DNA of 64,000 bases from Hemiscyllium ocellatum (taxonomy: Eukaryota). The stretch is from contig NC_083414.1 of NCBI RefSeq assembly GCF_020745735.1, positions 34,782,001-34,846,000 on the forward strand, read 5' to 3'. Shown here one piece after another: positions 3,231 to 64,000 of this stretch (position 1 is the first letter of the stretch; every line of letters starts with the position of its first letter). A program made the translations under genes and the position numbers. The notes under the pieces are model-generated. The model had not been told where the DNA came from. It saw nothing but the letters and a program-made list of their open reading frames with translations, and made no database searches.

Positions 3231-4148
3231 TGTACGTAAGTACATCATAGATAGATGTAAAAACAACAGGTTACTGCAATGGGTGATTTTAACTTCCCCA
3301 ATATTAACTGGGACTCCATTAGTTCCAGGAGTGTAGACGGGGCAGAATTTGTTAAATACATCCAGGAGGATTTTGTGAAACAGTATGTAGCTAGTCCAAC
3401 AAGGGAAGAGGCCATATGAGACCTTGTATTGGGGAGTTTGACTGGCCATGTGTTTGAGGTTTCACTGGGGGAGCGTTTTGGGAACAGTGATCATAATTCC
3501 ATAAGTTCTAAGATGGTTATGGATAAGGTCAAGATTGATCTGCTATATTGGGCGAATTATACCAGTATTATGCAGGAATTAGAGAAAATAGATTGGGGGC
3601 AACCATTTGGGGGTAAATCAACATCTCACATGTGGGATATTTTAAAGACCAGTTGATCAGAGTTCAGGACCCCAGCATGTTACTGTGGGGAAGAAGGATA
3701 AGGGTGGCAAGATTTGGGAACCTTGGATGATGAGAGATATTGAAAGATTAGTCAAAAGAAAAGGGAAGCATATGTAAGGTTTAGGAAACTAAAATCAGAC
3801 AAGGCCCTTGAGGAATATAATGGAAAGGAAGCTATTTTAACAAGGAGTTAGAAGGGCTAAAAGAGGTCATGAAATGTGCTTGGCACATTAAAACCAAGAG
3901 GGCAGCTAGGGAAAGGGCAGATCCAACTTAAGATCCAAGGAGGGAATTTAAGCATGGAACCAGAGAAAGTGGGTAATCCATAATGAGTATTTTGCATTGG
4001 TGTTCACTGAGGGAAGGACATGGATAATGGTAAGATTATGGAGGGGTATGTTGATGTTCTTGGGTGTGTCGATGTTAAGAAGTAGGAGGTGTTGGATGTC
4101 TTGAAAAATATTAAGGTAGTTAAAGTCTCCAAAGCCTGATGGGTTCTA
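3231..4148 (+). mobile_element. Old CR1 LINE ORF2, continuation (endonuclease to RT linker)
   Basis: MGDFNFPNINW and GERFGNSDHNSI endonuclease motifs. Ends at KSPKPDG. Confidence 0.85.
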
Positions 4149-4880
4149 AGAGAAAGTGAGGAATGCAGATGCTGGAGATCAGAGCTGAAAATGTGTTGCG
4201 GGAAAAGCGCAGCAGGTCAGGCAGCATCCAAGGAGCAGGAGAATCGATGTTTCGGGCATGAGCCCTTCTTCAAGAATGAGGAAAGCGTGCTAAGCGGGCG
4301 AGGACAAAAGGTAGGAAGGAGGGACTTGGGGAGGGGCATTGGAAATGTGATAGGTGGAAGGAGGTTAAGGTGAGGGTGGTAAGGTGAGGGTGATAGGCCG
4401 GAGTGGGGGTGGGGGCGGAGAGGTCAGGAAGAAGACTGCAGGTTAGGAAGGTGGTGCTGAGTTTGAGGGTTGGGACTGAGACAAGGTGGGGGGAGAGGAA
4501 ATGAGGAAACTGGAGAAACTGGAACCCTCCAACCACAAGAGATGAACTCAGATTTCTCCAGTTTCCTCATTTCCCCTCCCCCCACCTTGTCTCAGTCCCA
4601 ACCCTCGAACTCAGCACCACCTTCCTAACCTGCAATCTTCTTCCTGATCTCTCCGTCCCCACCCCCAATCCGGCCGATCACCCTCGCCTTATCACCCTCA
4701 CCTTAACCTCCTTTCACCAGTCACATTTCCAATGCCCTTCCCCCAAGTCCCTCCTCCCTCCCTGCCTGCTTAGCACACTTTCCTCATTCCTGAAGAAGGG
4801 CTCATGCCCGAAACGTCGATTCTCCTGCTCCTTGGAAGCTGCCTGACCTGCTGTGCTTTTCCAGCAACACATTTTCAGCT
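4149..4880. mobile_element. Penelope-like element family A: inverted terminal-repeat hairpin with 13-bp TSD
   Basis: Arms about 4177-4518 and 4552-4885 are reverse complements. CTGATGGGTTCTA is duplicated at 4136-4148 and 4881-4893. Each arm has a hammerhead motif. Confidence 0.85.
4786..4821 (+). ncRNA. Minimal type I hammerhead ribozyme motif, core intact (PLE family A)
   Basis: CUGAAGA-A-GGGC(UCAU)GCCC-GAAA-CG-UC. Stem III is reduced to the ACGU palindrome. Stem I is weak (AUUC/GAUU). Confidence 0.7.
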
Positions 4881-5350
4881 CTGATGGGTTCTATACCAGG
4901 ATACCGAGGGAGGCAAGGGCATTTCTGGAGCCTTGACAGAGAGCTCTGTATCCTCTTTAGTAATAGAGAAGGTCTTAGAAGACTGGAGAATAGCCACAAT
5001 TGTTCCTTTGTTTAAGAAGGGCAACAAGGATAATCCAGGAAATTATAGATAGGTGAACCTCACGCCAATGGAAGGGAAATTTTTGGAGAATATTTTTAGA
5101 GACAGGATTCACTCGCATTTGTAAAGGAATAGACTTGTTAAGGACACTCAGCAAGGCTTTGAGCAGGGGAAGTGATGTTTCACAAATTTGATTGGGTTTT
5201 ATGAGGAAATGATGAAGATGATTGATCAAGATAGGGCAGCGTACGTTGTTTATATGAAATTTACTAAAGTGTTTGACAAGGTCCCTCATGGTATAAAATC
5301 AGCATGGTCATTGAAGATAGAGGGTAGTTGTGTAAGCTGCCTAGCTCATG
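4881..5350 (+). mobile_element. Old CR1 LINE ORF2, RT fragment (third piece)
   Basis: EDWRIATIVPLFKKGNKDNPGNYR...FDKVPHG, with frameshifts and stops. Confidence 0.85.
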
Positions 5351-7564: not shown

Positions 7565-8400
7565 TCAGAATTAGAATATCCTTCAATGTCATGTATACTC
7601 AAGGACAAAAGGACAGGAGTACAGAGACAATGTTGCCCCACATGGCACCATCTTAGATACAAAGTACCTAGGTACAAATCTTAGATAGAAAATACAGAAA
7701 TAAAGGTAATTAGGAAAAAAACGTTACATTACCTTACAGTTATTCATAGGGTAAGCTGGAAAAATGAGAAACAAAGTTAAAGAGATAAGCATTACAGATT
7801 TTCCATAAAGGGCCTGAAGTAGATCAATGCGTGGGGCTTCCACACATAGTCTGACCAGTCTCACAAGCTGCTGACCACTCACACTGTTCTCCAATCCAAC
7901 AACTGCCCAGCTCTGCTCAGGCCTCCAGTCCACTAAATGTAACTGTTCCACTTGAGCCTCTAGCCCGCTGGCTGTCCCTGCACCACTCAGGCCTCCAACT
8001 TGCCAGCCCGTCCCCACTTGGGCCTCCAACCAGTGGCCAACCCCCTCAGGCCTCCAACTAGTGGCTGTCCACCCTCAGGCCTCTAACCGCTGGCTGTCCC
8101 TGCACCACTCAGGCCTCCAACTTGCCAGCCCGTCCCCCCTCGGGCCTCCAACCAGTGGCCGTCCCTGCCCTGCTCGGGCCTCCAGCCTGCTAGCGGTCCC
8201 TCCTCAGGCCTGCAGCCGGTTGGCCATCCCCACGCCACTCAGGCCTCCAGCCCACTGGCCATCCTCACTCTTCTTTGGCTTCCAGCCCACTCTGTTTTAT
8301 AGGAAAACATCAAAAATGGGAAAAAAGGGGAAAAAGAGAAGAAAACTCAAATAAATGAAGGAGTGGAGAAGCTCTGGTTGACATCGCCGCTAACTTGACG
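7565..8400 (-). mobile_element. Non-autonomous retroelement with a Rex-Babar-like 3' tail and an internal minisatellite
   Basis: The minus-strand end TTGAGTATACATGACATTGAAGGATATTCTAATTCT resembles the tails at about 11770-11808 and 45460-45500. Pyrimidine-rich 5' part. Confidence 0.5.
7915..8290 (+). repeat. GC-rich minisatellite, about 27-30 bp unit (CTCAGGCCTCCARCYNGYGGCYGTCCC)
   Basis: About a dozen degenerate copies anchored on GGCCTCCA, with a higher-order repeat at 7957-8040 and 8077-8160. Confidence 0.8.
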
Positions 8401-44212: not shown

Positions 44213-44280
44213 GAGAAAGGGAGGACTGCAGGTGCTGGAGATCAGAGTCAAAAAGTGTGACGCTGGAAAAGCACAGCCAG
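44213..44280 (-). mobile_element. PLE family A 3' tail fragment
   Basis: GAGAAAGGGAGGACTGCAGGTGCTGGAGATCAGAGTC...GGAAAAGCACAGC. Confidence 0.7.
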
Positions 44281-45563: not shown

Positions 45564-45928
45564 AAGGAGGAGAAAGTGAGGACTGCAGATGCTGGAGATC
45601 AGAGTCGAGAGCATGGTGATGGAAAAGCACAGCAGGTCAGGCAACATCACCGTTTCAGGCAAAAGCCATTCATCAGGAATGAGGCTCATGAGCCGGGGTG
45701 CTGAGAGATAAATGGGAGGGGGCGGGGCTGGCAGAAAGGTAGTTGAGAATGCAATAGGTAGCTGGAGGTTTGAGAGGTGAGAGGTCGGAGAGGAGGGTGC
45801 AGCAGATAGATGAGAAAGACGATGGACAGGTCAAGAGGTTGATGCTGAGATGGAGGCTTGGGACTGGGAAAAGGTGGCCGGGAAGGGGCGGGGGGGGGAA
45901 GAAACTGGTGAAATCCACATTAATCCCA
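45564..45928 (-). mobile_element. PLE family A terminal repeat with a damaged hammerhead
   Basis: Minus strand CTGATGAATGGCTTTTGCCTGAAACG, with the UH cleavage site deleted. TSD TTTCTAAACATG / TTTGTAAACATG. Confidence 0.8.
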
Positions 45929-47177
45929 TTTGTAAACATGTCAAATACATTTTAAACTGTTGAACACAATTTCAGCAGAGTAAGGAGCATTGTTAGTTTG
46001 CTGACTTTCAACAACTCTCTGCTGCTCATCTCACTTCATTCAGCAATATGTAGCATTGAATTGAGACGTTTCTGCATTAATAAGCTTTGTAATATAATGA
46101 ATGAACCAACATCAATTATATCCAGGAAGTACTCATTTGATCACATCTGCTGTAACGAATAATTAATGGTTGTGAGTAAACCAGATGAAACCAGATTAAT
46201 GCTTCATCCAAAATACTTTAAACTGCACAAAATCCAGTTCTTCATGTAACATAAGAAATAATATGAATTCCTATAAATCAGAAACATTTTCTCAAGCAGA
46301 AGAGGGAAAAAGCAAGGAGACCTGTTTTCCTAGGTGTCTGTCCTTTAATATTGCTGCAAAATTTCTTGCCGAGGGTGAGACCAATCTGGGGATCCAACAC
46401 AGAGATAGAAATAATGAAACAGGGGTTAGGCCTCCTGTTCTTAATGTTCTTTTAAAGTATCTCATTCCTCTTCCGATTGAATGTACAAAACAAAAAGAGT
46501 TGGAGGTAACAGATCATGCTAAAGAGTCAATGGAGATCATCAACTCAGTTCCAAGAAGAAAAAAGTGAAATTGAGATTTGTCTGAATTCCACCTTAAAGC
46601 CTGAAGCTTCTTACTGCAGCTCAGACTTGAGGTAGGACTTTCTTGCAGCCATAAATTTGGACCTCACACAGTTTTCAATTTATTTGTACATTTTCACTCC
46701 TTTCGAACAATCCTGTTTTAGATTTGTCGTTCAAAATAGGCAATTCTCCTTTATATGATCAAATCTTTTGGTCATGATCAGCAAAGCTTTAAAACCAACC
46801 ACTTAGTCCACCAAATCTGACAAACCATCTTGGCTTTCTCACAGCACATTATAATGCCAGGGCCAGATATAGCTGTACAGAGAGGTTGTCAACTAGATGA
46901 AAAATTTGACCTCTTATGTATTACTGATATTTCACAAGAATTATTTGTAATAATGAAATAAGACACTGGTTTATGGTAGATTATGTTCTGTAAAAGAGCC
47001 TTGCATCTCTTAAAAGAGTTCATTAAAAGATGCAGATAAATAGAGAGAATAGATGAAGGTTGACTTGGAGTTCACAAAGTGGATAAGAAGGATTTTTTGA
47101 AAATGCTGGTGTTGGACTGGGGTGTACAAAGTTAAAAATCACACAATACCAGGTTATAGTCCAACAGGTTTAATTGG

Positions 47178-47217
47178 AAGCACTAGCTTTCGGAGCACCA
47201 CTCCTTCGTCAGGTGGT
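47178..47217 (-). ncRNA. Minimal hammerhead ribozyme, core intact (PLE family B)
   Basis: ACCAC-CUGACGA-A-GGAGU(GGU)GCUCC-GAAA-GC-UA-GUGCUU. Stem I CAC/GUG, stem III palindrome AGCU. Confidence 0.78.
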
Positions 47218-47224
47218 ACTCCAC

Positions 47225-47265
47225 AACCACCTGATGAAGGAGCAGTGCTCTGAAAGCTAGTGCTT
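47225..47265 (+). ncRNA. Minimal hammerhead ribozyme, core intact, G-U closing pair in stem II
   Basis: AACCAC-CUGAUGA-A-GGAGC(AGU)GCUCU-GAAA-GC-UA-GUGCUU. Confidence 0.72.
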
Positions 47266-47705
47266 CCAATTAAACTTGTTGGACTATAACCTGGTATTGT
47301 GTGATTTTTAAAGAAGGATTTTGTTTATTTATAGGAAAGATTTCCTCAAATTAAAAAAAATGGAATATTCAGTTGATTAGTCAGAATTTCTGAATGGAAT
47401 AAGTAAGTTAATATTTCAGGTAAGGGCCTTTCTACAAATAAAGTCATATGGGTTGGCAAATTAGCAAGGCAAAAGCAATAAGTCCCAAACTTTGCACTTT
47501 GAGGAGAAACTAGCAGAATCTATGTAATGAGTAAAATGGAGAGCGAGAAACCCAAGATATGAGGAAAACACTGAACCACAAATGAGCCAAATGATAAAGT
47601 CTGTATGCCAACCACACATATCGAATGAAAGTGGTCACCATTATTTCCTTTACCTACAACATTTTCTCAGTAGAGGTAGTGAACATTTTCATCTTTATTT
47701 CCAGG

Positions 47706-47834
47706 TAAAAACAATGACTGCAGATGCTGGATACTCCAGAATCTGGAGTAGAGTGGTGTTGGAAAAGCACAGCAGTTCAAGCAGCATCAGAGGAACAGTA
47801 AAATCGACATTTTGGGCAAAAGCCCTTCATCAGG
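47706..47834 (-). mobile_element. PLE family A-related 3' end (hammerhead to tail), fused to tRNA-Asp
   Basis: Minus strand CCTGATGAAGGGCTTTTGCCCAAAATGTCGATTTT (CpG-decayed hammerhead)...CCAGCATCTGCAGTCATTGTTTTTA. Confidence 0.8.
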
Positions 47835-47839
47835 TCATT

Positions 47840-47911
47840 TCCTTGTTAGTATAGTGGTTAGTATCCCTGACTGTCACGTGGGAGACTGGGGTTCAATTCC
47901 CTGGCGAGGAG
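47840..47911 (+). pseudogene. tRNA-Asp(GTC) pseudogene
   Basis: TCCTTGTTAGTATAGTGGTTAGTATCCCTGACTGTCACGTGGGAGACTGGGGTTCAATTCCCTGGCGAGGAG, 72 nt, anticodon GTC at 47873-47875. About 10 differences from vertebrate tRNA-Asp as I recall it, mostly CpG transitions. No CCA. Confidence 0.9.
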
Positions 47912-49548
47912 GCTGCTACTTGGATTTACATTCTGGTGCACTTTTGTCATTTCATCTTTATTTCCAGGCCATCAAGTCTAATGTTTCCTCATGCAACTTT
48001 ACAGCAACACATCGACTTCACAGGTGGAGCATTCCTTGTGAGATTCTGCCAATTTTAATTGGAGTATGATTAAAAGAAAATAGTCATTGACATGAAAAGC
48101 TACGCTGAACAGAGGCACTCGGTGAAGTTTGATCCTCAAAGTGAAGATTTGAAGTATTTTGGTCATACACAAAAGACTTCACTTCAGGTAAAAAGCAGAA
48201 ATGATTCAGTCTAATGCCAGAAGCTTTCTAGCAAACAAATATACTGCCTTATCGGACCAGTCAGTAGTCTTGGTTTCTTCATAACATATCTAATTACAGT
48301 GTAAGCAATGATCTCTCTTGATATTGCACTTGTAGCACATATATCAACGCACCTTCAAATATATCATTCACACTCACAATTTGAGAGTTTCTTTAAGAGT
48401 GTTACTTTTCTTTTCGTAGATTGTCTATAAACTTGAATTCAAATTAACTAGTGCCTTTTCCAAAGGGTAGGAAGAAAATGTAACTCCCCTCCCATCATGT
48501 GTTATTAGCACAACATGTGGCACAAGCTCCATTTAAACATGCACAAAAACAGCTGCTGTCTCAGGACCTCAAAGAACCTCTCAGAACCTCACTGGCTGTA
48601 GTTCAGGGTTTTCAGGGGCAGCACTGCGGTGACAGGAAAAGACAAAGATCCTTTCATGTGGTGCCTAAAGCATCTACATTTCCCTGGTGTTGAAATGATC
48701 ACCCTCACATGGATGTCATGCAGCCCTGGACTAGATTCAAACTCAGCAACAATTTTATACTGACAAACTGACCCTACTTCTAGAACTAACTCCAATGTGA
48801 AGAATCATTTACTGAGTTTTTTTTTTAAACATGTGGAAACAGTTACGTTAGGATATCAGCAAACAAGGGCATCGACAGATCAGAACGCAGCTCTCACAAT
48901 ATCCTTCTTTTTGCAAACTGTGGCAGTGTTGCATTGGAAGTACAAACGTTTCATAATATTTCAGCCCATTTTCTGTTTCAAAGGCCTACTAAGTGTCGAA
49001 GGTCTATTGTTGAAGACTAGATTCAAGTGAAACCATAAACATGCCAATTGAATAACACTCACATCAAATATGAATGAAGCAGAGTGGATGAAGAGGACAC
49101 CACTGTCTCTGAACAACAGTTAAGACTATAAAGTTCTCACTCATCATACTTATTTGGCATTACCAGGAAAAGCTGGGGAATAATGCAAGATTAAGCTTTC
49201 ATAATATATTTATCTATAATATATAGATATCACCTGTTAAGTCCAGTATAGTTTATTTGTTGCAGAATAAAACATTGCTCTGAGTTGTATTTAACATGAT
49301 CATATGCACGTCAACTCTTTGTGTAATTTAATATCTAGCTGGAATATCTAGTCAGAGTGGACATGATTCCCATTTCTCTTTCCTTTCCTGCTGAAAGCAG
49401 TCACTCTCATAAGACATTGGTAACTTTCCACCCATTTGAACCTAAGTATTTGGTTGAAACAGCATCCAAACTTGAGATGAATCATAGATATATTTAGTCA
49501 TGTCCTACTTAACCTGAATCTATGCAAATGTTTTTAAAAGATTTTCCT

Positions 49549-58322: not shown

Positions 58323-58675
58323 AAAATCTTAAGAAGTCTTCATCAACAACAAAAACTGAAGTTGCTGGATAAACTCAGCAGGTCTGGCAGCATCCATAGA
58401 GAGAAATCTAAGTTAACTCGATTTCAATGGACCCAAAATGTTAATTATGATCTCTCTCCACAAATGCTGCCAGACCTGCTGAGTTTTTTCCAGGAACTTC
58501 ATTTTTTGTTGTTGATAAAGACTTCTTAAGATTTTAAAATCCAATTTAACTCGATTTCACTGGACCCAAAATGTTAACTCTGATCTCCCTCTATGGATAC
58601 TACCAGACCCGCTGAGCTTTACCAGCATTTTCTGCTTTTGTTTCTGATTTACAGCATTCACAGTTCTTTTGTTTT
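58323..58675. mobile_element. PLE family D compound insertion (palindrome plus tandem partial copy)
   Basis: Palindrome 58323-58535 and a second direct copy at 58546-58675. TSD TTAAGAAGTCTTCAT / TTAAGAAATCTTCAT at 58329-58343 and 58676-58690. Confidence 0.78.
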
Positions 58676-62200: not shown

Positions 62201-63544
62201 CATGTTAGGCCTCCAACATCTTTCTTACTTGCCCTCACCCACCCTAATCTACTAGCCCTGCTTGCCCTCTGCATTGCCAACTCATTCACTCATGACAGTT
62301 TCCTATCTACATTTCTGGTAATAGCTATGCCACCCACTTTTGTCTCCCATAATAAATCTCTTACTCCCATTATGAAGGAATCCTGACTCTGACCATGCTG
62401 AACAGAGCCTGGACTGGTATAGGACACTGCCATTGATACACTCTACCAGGAACTGCTGAGCAAACTATATCCCATAGACTTGACTGAGCCCTGCTAATCA
62501 GTGGGACAAACTTCTTTGCTTTGTGTCTGTGCTAAACAGCATGGCAAAACAGTAGTCATGTGAGCCTGATATTGCTGGATGAGGGGGTAAGGTGCAAGAA
62601 AACAAAACAAGGCAATTCAAGGCAGGGATGCTGTGAGCATCCAGATAGACATACAGAGACTGAGCACTAAGAGAGCAATTGAAGAACTTGAAAGTTGCAG
62701 CCCAGTCCATGAGCTGGGTATATGTCCCTGAGCACAGTGTCCTTGCTGTAGTATTACAGTGAGAGCTGCCAATGTAGTCAGAAGTGTAGAAAGAACCTGT
62801 AATTGGATCCAACATGTGAAATGAGGATTCTTAGAGGCTGGCACATTTCAGGTGCCAATGTCTATGCGGTGTGTCCAGTACCAATGGCACTTGTCCTGAG
62901 ATATTGTTTCCCTGGTTTGCAACATGGATATTGTTTGGTGCAAACGGTAAGCCGAATCCACCAGGTCCAAGTTCAGGTTTATTGTTCAGTTTTTCCAACA
63001 GTGAACGTATTTGAAGAGTTCAGAAAGATGGGAGGCTAAATCCTAAAGGGATGAGTTGTACTTTTAACAAGCATTTAGTAAGTGTTAATCCCCATCAATT
63101 GGCATCTCACCACTGTCCACAGGGGATCTCACCAAGTGACAGAAGCTCATCTTAATGAAGTGCACTGTAGGAACCTTTGCATATAATTAATCTATACATA
63201 GTCCTTTCACACTTCTCATTTTGTGTGCATATAGTACATTGTGCAAATATCGAGGACAGGTTGCACAAAACAATATCCCAAGGTAGTACACGGTGAACTT
63301 TGTAATATTCATGCTCATTAATCTACTCCTATATATTCCTTCTTAATCATTCCATTTTCAAAACATATTAGCAATTAACATCCATCTGGCGGCTGCTGCT
63401 TATTGAAAAACAGATCAATTACATGACCCAGCGCTCATGGAACAAAACACTGCAACAAGTCTCTTATCCTATTGATTGCAGTGAAACGGTGTGCTCCTGG
63501 AAATACCTTGCACCACATTTCTCTGGAGAATTTCCTTCATTGTT

Positions 63545-64000
63545 GTGACACGTGGGAACACCACCCATACGAGTGCGACAGGTACTCATGTGACTTGACC
63601 AGCATTGTCTACCTCATATGCTGCAGACAAGGATGCTCCGAGGCACAGTATATTGGTGAGACAAGCAGAAGCTATGACAAAGAATGAATAGAGAGTGCAC
63701 AACAATCGAGCTTTTGCCCAAAACATCGATTCTCCTGCTCCACAGATGCCGCCTGACCTGCTGTGCTTTTCCAACACCACACTCTTGACTGCGCAATAAT
63801 TGCTAGACAGGGATGTTTCCTCCTAGTTGGGAAACATTTCAGCGGTCAGGGACATTTGGCCTTGGATCTCTGGATGACCATCTTCCAAGGAGGACTTCGG
63901 TATATGCAACAATGCAGCGTTGCCAAGCAGAGGCTGTTAGCCAAGTGCGGTACCCATGAGGATGGCCCCAACCGGGATCGTGGGTTCATGTGACTACAGG
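63545..64000 (+). pseudogene. Penelope-like GIY-YIG endonuclease remnant
   Basis: YSCDLTSIVYLICCRQGCSEAQYIGET (VY...YIG motif), then VGKHFSGQGH...GTHEDGPNRDRGFM. Runs off the window end. Confidence 0.85.
63709..63789 (+). mobile_element. PLE family A fragment inserted in the GIY-YIG remnant
   Basis: GCTTTTGCCCAAAACATCGATTCTCC (hammerhead 3' half). Degenerate 13-bp TSD TGCACAACAATCG / TGCGCAATAATTG. Confidence 0.75.

Follow-up and report, generated by a model that had tools for sequence, protein, structure and literature searches.

One 19-bp target-site duplication encloses a PLE-type hammerhead arm and an oppositely oriented tRNA-Asp copy in a shark genome

The locus lies in a 64-kb stretch of DNA, here called the window, and consists of a 244-bp insert held between two exact copies (19/19) of the 19-mer TTTCATCTTTATTTCCAGG. 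Inside the insert, the 3' arm of a mini-element of Penelope-like element (PLE) type, the pentanucleotide TCATT, a tRNA-Asp and a trailer follow one another in that order. The features, with window coordinates and strand, are:

47687-47705, no strand: left copy of the target-site duplication (TSD), matching 47950-47968 at 19/19 positions; an orthologous contig of organism C crosses from it into the PLE end.
47706-47834, minus strand: 129-nt 3' arm of a PLE-type hammerhead mini-element, its 3' end adjoining the left TSD, 5'-truncated 1 base upstream of CUGAUGA.
about 47706-47740, minus strand: optional PLE 'tail' of about 35 nt, defined against the tail-less ends at 4880 and 63786.
47806-47833, minus strand: decayed minimal hammerhead core, read from the sequence and from alignment to family copies.
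47835-47839, plus strand: putative 5' leader TCATT of a tRNA transcript; the hexamer GTCATT, made up of G47834 and this leader, is found again at the trailer end.
47840-47911, plus strand: tRNA-Asp(GTC) retro-pseudogene of 72 nt without CCA (ARAGORN; Rfam RF00005).
47912-47949, plus strand: trailer of 38 nt, with T4 at 47942-47945 followed by GTCA, read from the sequence.
47946-47953, plus strand: GTCATTTC, a repeat of the leader and tRNA start (first copy at 47834-47841) that spans the trailer/TSD boundary.
47950-47968, no strand: right copy of the TSD, an exact match to the left copy, covered by the organism C contig 47881-48394.

Much of this anatomy had been proposed in a preliminary description of the DNA. 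The duplication is confirmed as exact, with only two copies in the window by BLAST; the minus-strand PLE 3' end is borne out by family homology over 47706-47834 that stops one base 5' of CTGATGA (47827-47833); and TCATT is indeed followed by a plus-strand tRNA-Asp without CCA, called by both ARAGORN and Rfam. The trailer, described as about 35 nt ending in TTTT, is present and contains the TTTT, but GTCA stands between this run and the right repeat. The window has only six exact direct repeats of at least 17 nt spaced by no more than 600 bp; of the five besides the TTTCATCTTTATTTCCAGG pair, at least four fall in tandem or simple-repeat sequence. The RNA 3' ends of both segments face outward at the TSDs, the PLE terminus at 47706 (minus strand) and the trailer end at 47949 (plus strand), and the two 5' ends meet internally with an overlap of at most 1 nt at the PLE/tRNA junction.

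The window contains six further copies of the repeat family to which the PLE-type arm belongs; the arm is 75-85% identical to them and, by alignment, ends at the family's natural tailed terminus. In the sense direction, family copies carry CTGATGA, a helix II hairpin of 4-5 bp, GAAAC and GTC, and share a 3' terminus about 100 nt further on. A minimal hammerhead architecture is known for metazoan Penelope-like elements (PMC4209133), and the family matches it because the CTGATGA-helix II-GAAAC-GTC series lies about 100 nt from the 3' end. In the studied copy, the core comprises CUGAUGA (47833-47827), helix II (47826-47814), AAAA in place of the consensus GAAA (47813-47810) and UGUC, with the cleavage-site C at 47806. 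The hammerhead of this arm is a remnant: the 5' strand of helix I is missing, and the conserved GAAA is now AAAA. Rfam models at the gathering and E-value thresholds call the tRNA alone and leave the hammerhead uncalled. The summed contig depth of the family is about 10^5 times single copy in Logan contigs, and a 128-nt contig of organism B spans the entire arm (47705-47834).

Single-arm insertions are common in the window. A TSD search at the single arms at 44214, 17296, 63786 and 45567 yields no convincing duplication, and a search for open reading frames (ORFs) and inverted repeats beside the long arm at 45567 yields nothing PLE-like; no ORF adjoins the long arms. Since no reverse transcriptase (RT) or endonuclease ORF is tied to the family in the window, its careful name is 'PLE-type non-autonomous element'. 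Two ORF pieces at 63472-63993 look by eye like a GIY-YIG endonuclease (...VYLICC...YIGET...), with no match in Pfam, and a hammerhead-family arm truncated at both ends (63710-63786) interrupts them.

Two hairpins in the window provide a frame for the geometry of the insert. The hairpin at 4150-4880 belongs to the same family as the studied arm and is enclosed by a 13-bp TSD, CTGATGGGTTCTA (window 4136-4893). Its inverted arms measure about 380 nt, the left one with a tail of about 33 nt and the right one tail-less, and the end of the right arm overlaps the TSD by CTGAT, a possible microhomology. The mini-hairpin at 47098-47298 belongs to a second hammerhead family and is enclosed by a 12-bp TSD, AAGAAGGATTTT (window 47085-47322); its left arm has a tail of about 37 nt, the other arm has none, and both arms turn about 8-10 nt upstream of CUGAUGA. 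The hallmarks of PLE insertions, namely inverted arms, a one-sided tail of 30-40 nt and TSDs of variable length (PMC8557442, PMC3846280), are thus present here as inverted arms, one-sided tails of 33-37 nt and TSDs of 13 and 12 bp. PLE reverse transcription has two alternative internal start sites, and it is to these that the tail corresponds (PMC11167929). The proposal that the tRNA occupies the position of an inverted arm holds for both hairpins checked in the window, which show the same outward 3'-end geometry. Rfam miRNA matches over the PLE hairpins were dismissed as inverted-repeat artefacts, the mini-hairpin being matched merely as a generic hairpin. Elsewhere in the window, an inverted-arm element of a related family (CTGGATAAACTCAGCAGGTCTGGCAGCATC...) occupies 58326-58535, with an inverted repeat that runs into its apparent flanks, and is followed by a 133-bp direct duplication at 58428 and 58561; another direct duplication, with a 122-bp period, lies at 7965-8160 (exact 17-mers at 7965/8087 and 8020/8142).

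On the other side of the junction, ARAGORN identifies a tRNA-Asp(GTC). Rfam places the tRNA at 47840-47911, with two broken pairs and a score of 35.2 bits, above the gathering score of 29. GCTGCT directly follows the discriminator base, and the tRNA-Asp is therefore without CCA. Position 47870 is A in this copy and C in most other tRNA-Asp contigs; relative to the canonical vertebrate tRNA-Asp, the copy presumably carries about 10 differences, mostly through CpG decay. The octamer GTCATTTC occurs at 47834-47841 and again 112 nt away at 47946-47953, and is one of only two 8-mer direct repeats in 47800-47975. Its right copy is made up of the trailer end and the first four TSD bases, of which 4 nt (TTTC) may represent a priming microhomology. 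RNA polymerase III usually starts about 5-6 nt upstream of the tRNA.

Because leader and trailer are present and CCA is absent, the template of the tRNA segment would be a primary transcript or an RNA bearing gene flanks, not a mature tRNA. To this extent the earlier identification of an unprocessed pre-tRNA stands, with its leader, its trailer and its lack of CCA; the clean oligo-U end that belonged to it does not, since GTCA follows TTTT and repeats the leader. For the same reason, the template was probably not a cleanly oligo-U-terminated pre-tRNA, and GTCA after TTTT fits read-through into a next unit.

The source of this transcript can be approached through related sequences. BLAST of the trailer and the tRNA against the window returns no further copy. 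In organism B, a 158-nt contig corresponds to 47834-47936, comprising the G, the leader, the tRNA and 25 nt of the trailer, at 86% identity, and is a paralogous tRNA-Asp unit with the common leader and proximal trailer. A contig joint from 47935 to 47834 is found in two organism B samples and indicates that the tRNA-Asp unit is tandemly repeated elsewhere, on the strength of one contig type in another species. At 47917, organisms A, B and C all have a depth of 2-5 times single copy. The organism B match and this depth argue that the leader and proximal trailer come from a low-copy tRNA-Asp locus and not from a dispersed repeat. As judged from sequence, the source is apparently a low-copy, tandem tRNA-Asp locus. 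In the simplest reading, the template would be one full tandem tRNA-Asp unit, read through T4, with UUUC paired to the GAAA-3' of the nicked bottom strand.

Copy number and age follow from alignment of Logan contigs to 47300-48400; the contigs come from the source species, organism A, and from two species related to it, organisms B and C. The flanks lie at single-copy depth, as does the segment 47929-47965 (distal trailer and TSD), the latter in organisms A and C, so the composite is not amplified. The suggestion that the locus might belong to a PLE-mobilized tRNA-SINE or another amplified composite family is not supported by this depth. Recurrent contig joints at 47834 were considered as a preferred 5' end and rejected, since any PLE copy stops aligning where the reference turns to tRNA. 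In organism C, one contig (47300-47722) contains the left flank, the TSD and the first 17 nt of the PLE arm, and another (47881-48394) contains the 3' half of the tRNA, the trailer, the TSD and the right flank, with 24 differences in 514 nt. The PLE/tRNA junction was queried with 62 nt spanning it, sampled as three 31-mers: 3/3 words are present in several organism A individuals and 2/3 in organism C runs from two studies. Organism C thus carries all three junctions; the insertion predates the separation of A from C (a difference of about 4-5%) and is therefore old. For organism B, the left flank has contig cover up to a point six bases inside the insert, and neither sample has a contig over the right flank at 47966-48113, possibly through a deletion in that species or a filter artefact. 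As contigs of organisms A, B and C reveal neither an empty site nor an intermediate allele, the reading as one event rests on the 19-bp TSD. The insert is best read as a single old event, not as a member of an amplified family.

We propose that the insert is a single chimeric retro-insertion: a PLE endonuclease would have made one staggered break, and dual (twin) priming at this break would have produced the insert. We assign this reading a probability of about 0.6. The top strand would be nicked after ...CCAGG, and its 3'-OH would prime reverse transcription of the PLE mini-element RNA at the normal tailed start, giving a left arm that stops just 5' of the hammerhead. This start site lacks homology to the target, in line with what is reported in vitro. 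A nick in the bottom strand 19 nt away would leave two 3' overhangs. The bottom-strand 3' end (...GATGAAA) could then anneal through up to 4 nt (GAAA:UUUC) to a sense transcript of the tRNA-Asp locus whose synthesis had passed the T4 terminator and continued into the leader of the following tandem unit. Copying would run as far as the 5' end of this transcript, which lies 5-6 nt before the tRNA, where RNA polymerase III typically starts. Head-to-head joining of the two cDNAs and filling of the gaps would produce the 19-bp duplication. The polymerase that copied the tRNA, the read-through, the order of events and the joining of the cDNAs are the parts of this scheme that we infer.

Several features of the locus converge on dual priming. 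The perfect 19-bp TSD brackets both parts and nothing else, and the outward geometry of the 3' ends equals that of the hairpins at 4150-4880 and 47098-47298. The 3' end of the PLE arm coincides with its natural tailed terminus, and the tRNA segment has no CCA and starts 5-6 nt before the tRNA. The stretch 47834-47936 recurs (86%) in a low-copy organism B contig with a tandem joint, and GTCATTTC recurs after 112 nt at the leader and the trailer end. Depth over 47929-47965 is single-copy in A and C, and the junctions are common to organism C. Precedent adds to this: in vitro, a purified PLE protein makes nicks in both DNA strands and extends them (PMC11167929), and antisense tRNA/LINE-1 and 5S/LINE-1 chimeric insertions in mammals are attributed to twin priming (PMC13174262, which cites Ostertag and Kazazian 2001 for the mechanism).

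Other points weigh against it. In vitro, PLE reverse transcription requires a binding motif in the element's own RNA and begins at specific internal sites (PMC11167929), so copying of a tRNA transcript would be off-rule. The case is a single one, the GTCA after TTTT points to a template other than a normally terminated pre-tRNA, the tandem source is deduced from one contig type in another species, the right flank is uncovered in organism B, and the family in the window is not tied to a PLE RT/endonuclease ORF. The earlier idea that the second arm was copied from a second RNA molecule fits the anatomy of this insert and, coming from a single event, does not extend to a general rule for PLEs. 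Likewise, the idea that PLE RT retroposes Pol III RNA in trans finds a TSD-flanked tRNA copy beside a PLE arm; that the PLE RT itself did the copying goes further than the locus establishes.

The main rival, which we consider unlikely, is a 5' transduction, in which the PLE machinery would mobilize a single template: an antisense read-through RNA from a locus where a 5'-truncated PLE arm lay 5-6 nt upstream of an oppositely oriented tRNA-Asp gene, its 5' end being joined to the target by the TTTC microhomology. One priming event would then suffice. Single-arm insertions are common in the window; the arm itself contains, downstream of its hammerhead, the cis-acting signal for PLE reverse transcription (PMC11167929), and sequence unrelated to a PLE can be mobilized in trans by PLE terminal repeats (PMC3846280). 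The price is that a tRNA gene must be transcribed in antisense, a rare occurrence next to the sense pre-tRNA, and that two coincidences must be accepted, namely a junction at a Pol III-type start (-5/-6) and another end 4 nt past T4; moreover, the sample of contigs listed contains no second copy of the junction. Somewhat less likely again is a capture during break repair, in which a PLE endonuclease break and a target-primed PLE arm would be completed by a host pathway or another element's RT that adds the tRNA-Asp, the candidates being microhomology-mediated templated synthesis on RNA or DNA and a CR1/L2-type RT. The 4-nt microhomology at the right junction agrees with such a capture. End joining, however, typically gives short local templated insertions, which a 118-nt insert running from a Pol III-like start does not resemble, and the PLE protein alone extends both strands in vitro (PMC11167929). 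Capture of this kind is not separable from dual priming by sequence alone.

The remaining readings carry far less weight. A resident tRNA-Asp gene or older retrocopy might have received a PLE arm alongside it, or the reverse, as two independent events; the 6-nt repeat ATTTCC (47697-47702 and 47837-47842), which flanks the PLE arm alone, would speak for this. That 6-mer is at chance level and would misplace the family's 3' terminus, whereas the perfect 19-bp repeat brackets both parts, the tRNA is decayed and organism C holds all three junctions together, making such a history improbable; on the evidence of the TSD we reject nested independent insertions. The least probable reading, with a probability close to negligible, is the amplified composite family, a PLE-mobilized tRNA-SINE. 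Although tRNA heads are the usual start of a SINE and a PLE-type arm could act as a mobilization signal, the tRNA and the arm lie on opposite strands, so that the tRNA promoter is unable to transcribe the arm. The distal trailer and TSD are single-copy, the trailer has no further match in the window, and the best-supported loose ends listed at 47833/47834 run into the PLE consensus (AATGAGG...) and not into a tRNA leader. Orientation and copy number thus lead us to reject the SINE reading. Template switching and RNA ligation were also rejected, as both would place the parts on the same strand, whereas here they occupy opposite strands.

Dual priming bears on a question that the literature still describes as undefined, the formation of PLE inverted-arm insertions (PMC8557442). 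Two routes to a hairpin have been put forward: self-priming by snap-back (PMC3846280), and the reaction observed in vitro, in which both nicked strands are extended (PMC11167929). A foreign RNA has a polarity and defined ends of its own, and a second arm made from it can distinguish the two; the second arm here is not a snap-back copy because snap-back self-priming can copy the first arm only. It is about an even bet that, during PLE integration, each of the two staggered nicks independently primes its own cDNA and that the second can take up an unrelated nuclear RNA, here a read-through tandem-unit pre-tRNA-Asp. If so, PLE hairpins would arise through dual priming and not through snap-back self-priming, and the PLE machinery would be a previously unrecognized source of Pol III retro-pseudogenes in sharks. 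The recent finding of antisense tRNA capture by LINE-1 twin priming would also be extended to a third retroelement class. In conclusion, the locus suggests that Penelope-type elements copy RNA from both ends of their own break. Its value is that of a natural experiment on PLE integration, limited to a single old case.

Among known systems, the closest likeness is to the tRNA/LINE-1 chimeras (PMC13174262), in which one TSD likewise encloses a retroelement 3' segment and an oppositely oriented copy of a Pol III RNA, and which are explained in the same way as here, by two reverse transcriptions from both ends of an element-made break. Those chimeras mostly contain tRNA halves (nt 1-37), whereas this insert holds a complete tRNA with leader and trailer; unlike them, it involves a PLE-type hammerhead mini-element, with no poly(A), no TT/AAAA site and a TSD of 19 bp. 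With PLE hairpins (PMC8557442, PMC3846280, PMC11167929), the insert has in common a tailed 3' arm adjoining the TSD, a head-to-head second segment and a TSD of variable length; it differs in that the second arm is a copy of a cellular tRNA transcript and not of the element itself. Our search, which covered the literature in part, returned no PLE/tRNA head-to-head chimera and no paper joining Penelope-like elements and twin priming. Like the U6/LINE-1 chimeras (PMC6789731), the event captures a Pol III transcript during retroelement integration within one TSD; there the parts have the same orientation, as template switching or RNA ligation would place them (PMC13174262, PMC6789731), whereas here they are oppositely oriented. 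In Adineta vaga, PLE-mediated trans-mobilization involves host sequences framed by pseudo-LTRs (pLTRs; PMC3846280), and as in that case a non-PLE sequence lies inside a PLE-type TSD beside a PLE terminal repeat. There, however, the host sequence sits between direct pLTRs and is Pol II genic with introns, while here a 118-nt Pol III-type segment is antisense to a single arm. The event therefore resembles the L1 twin-priming chimeras and the PLE hairpins, and is a member neither of the template-switch chimeras nor of any SINE family.
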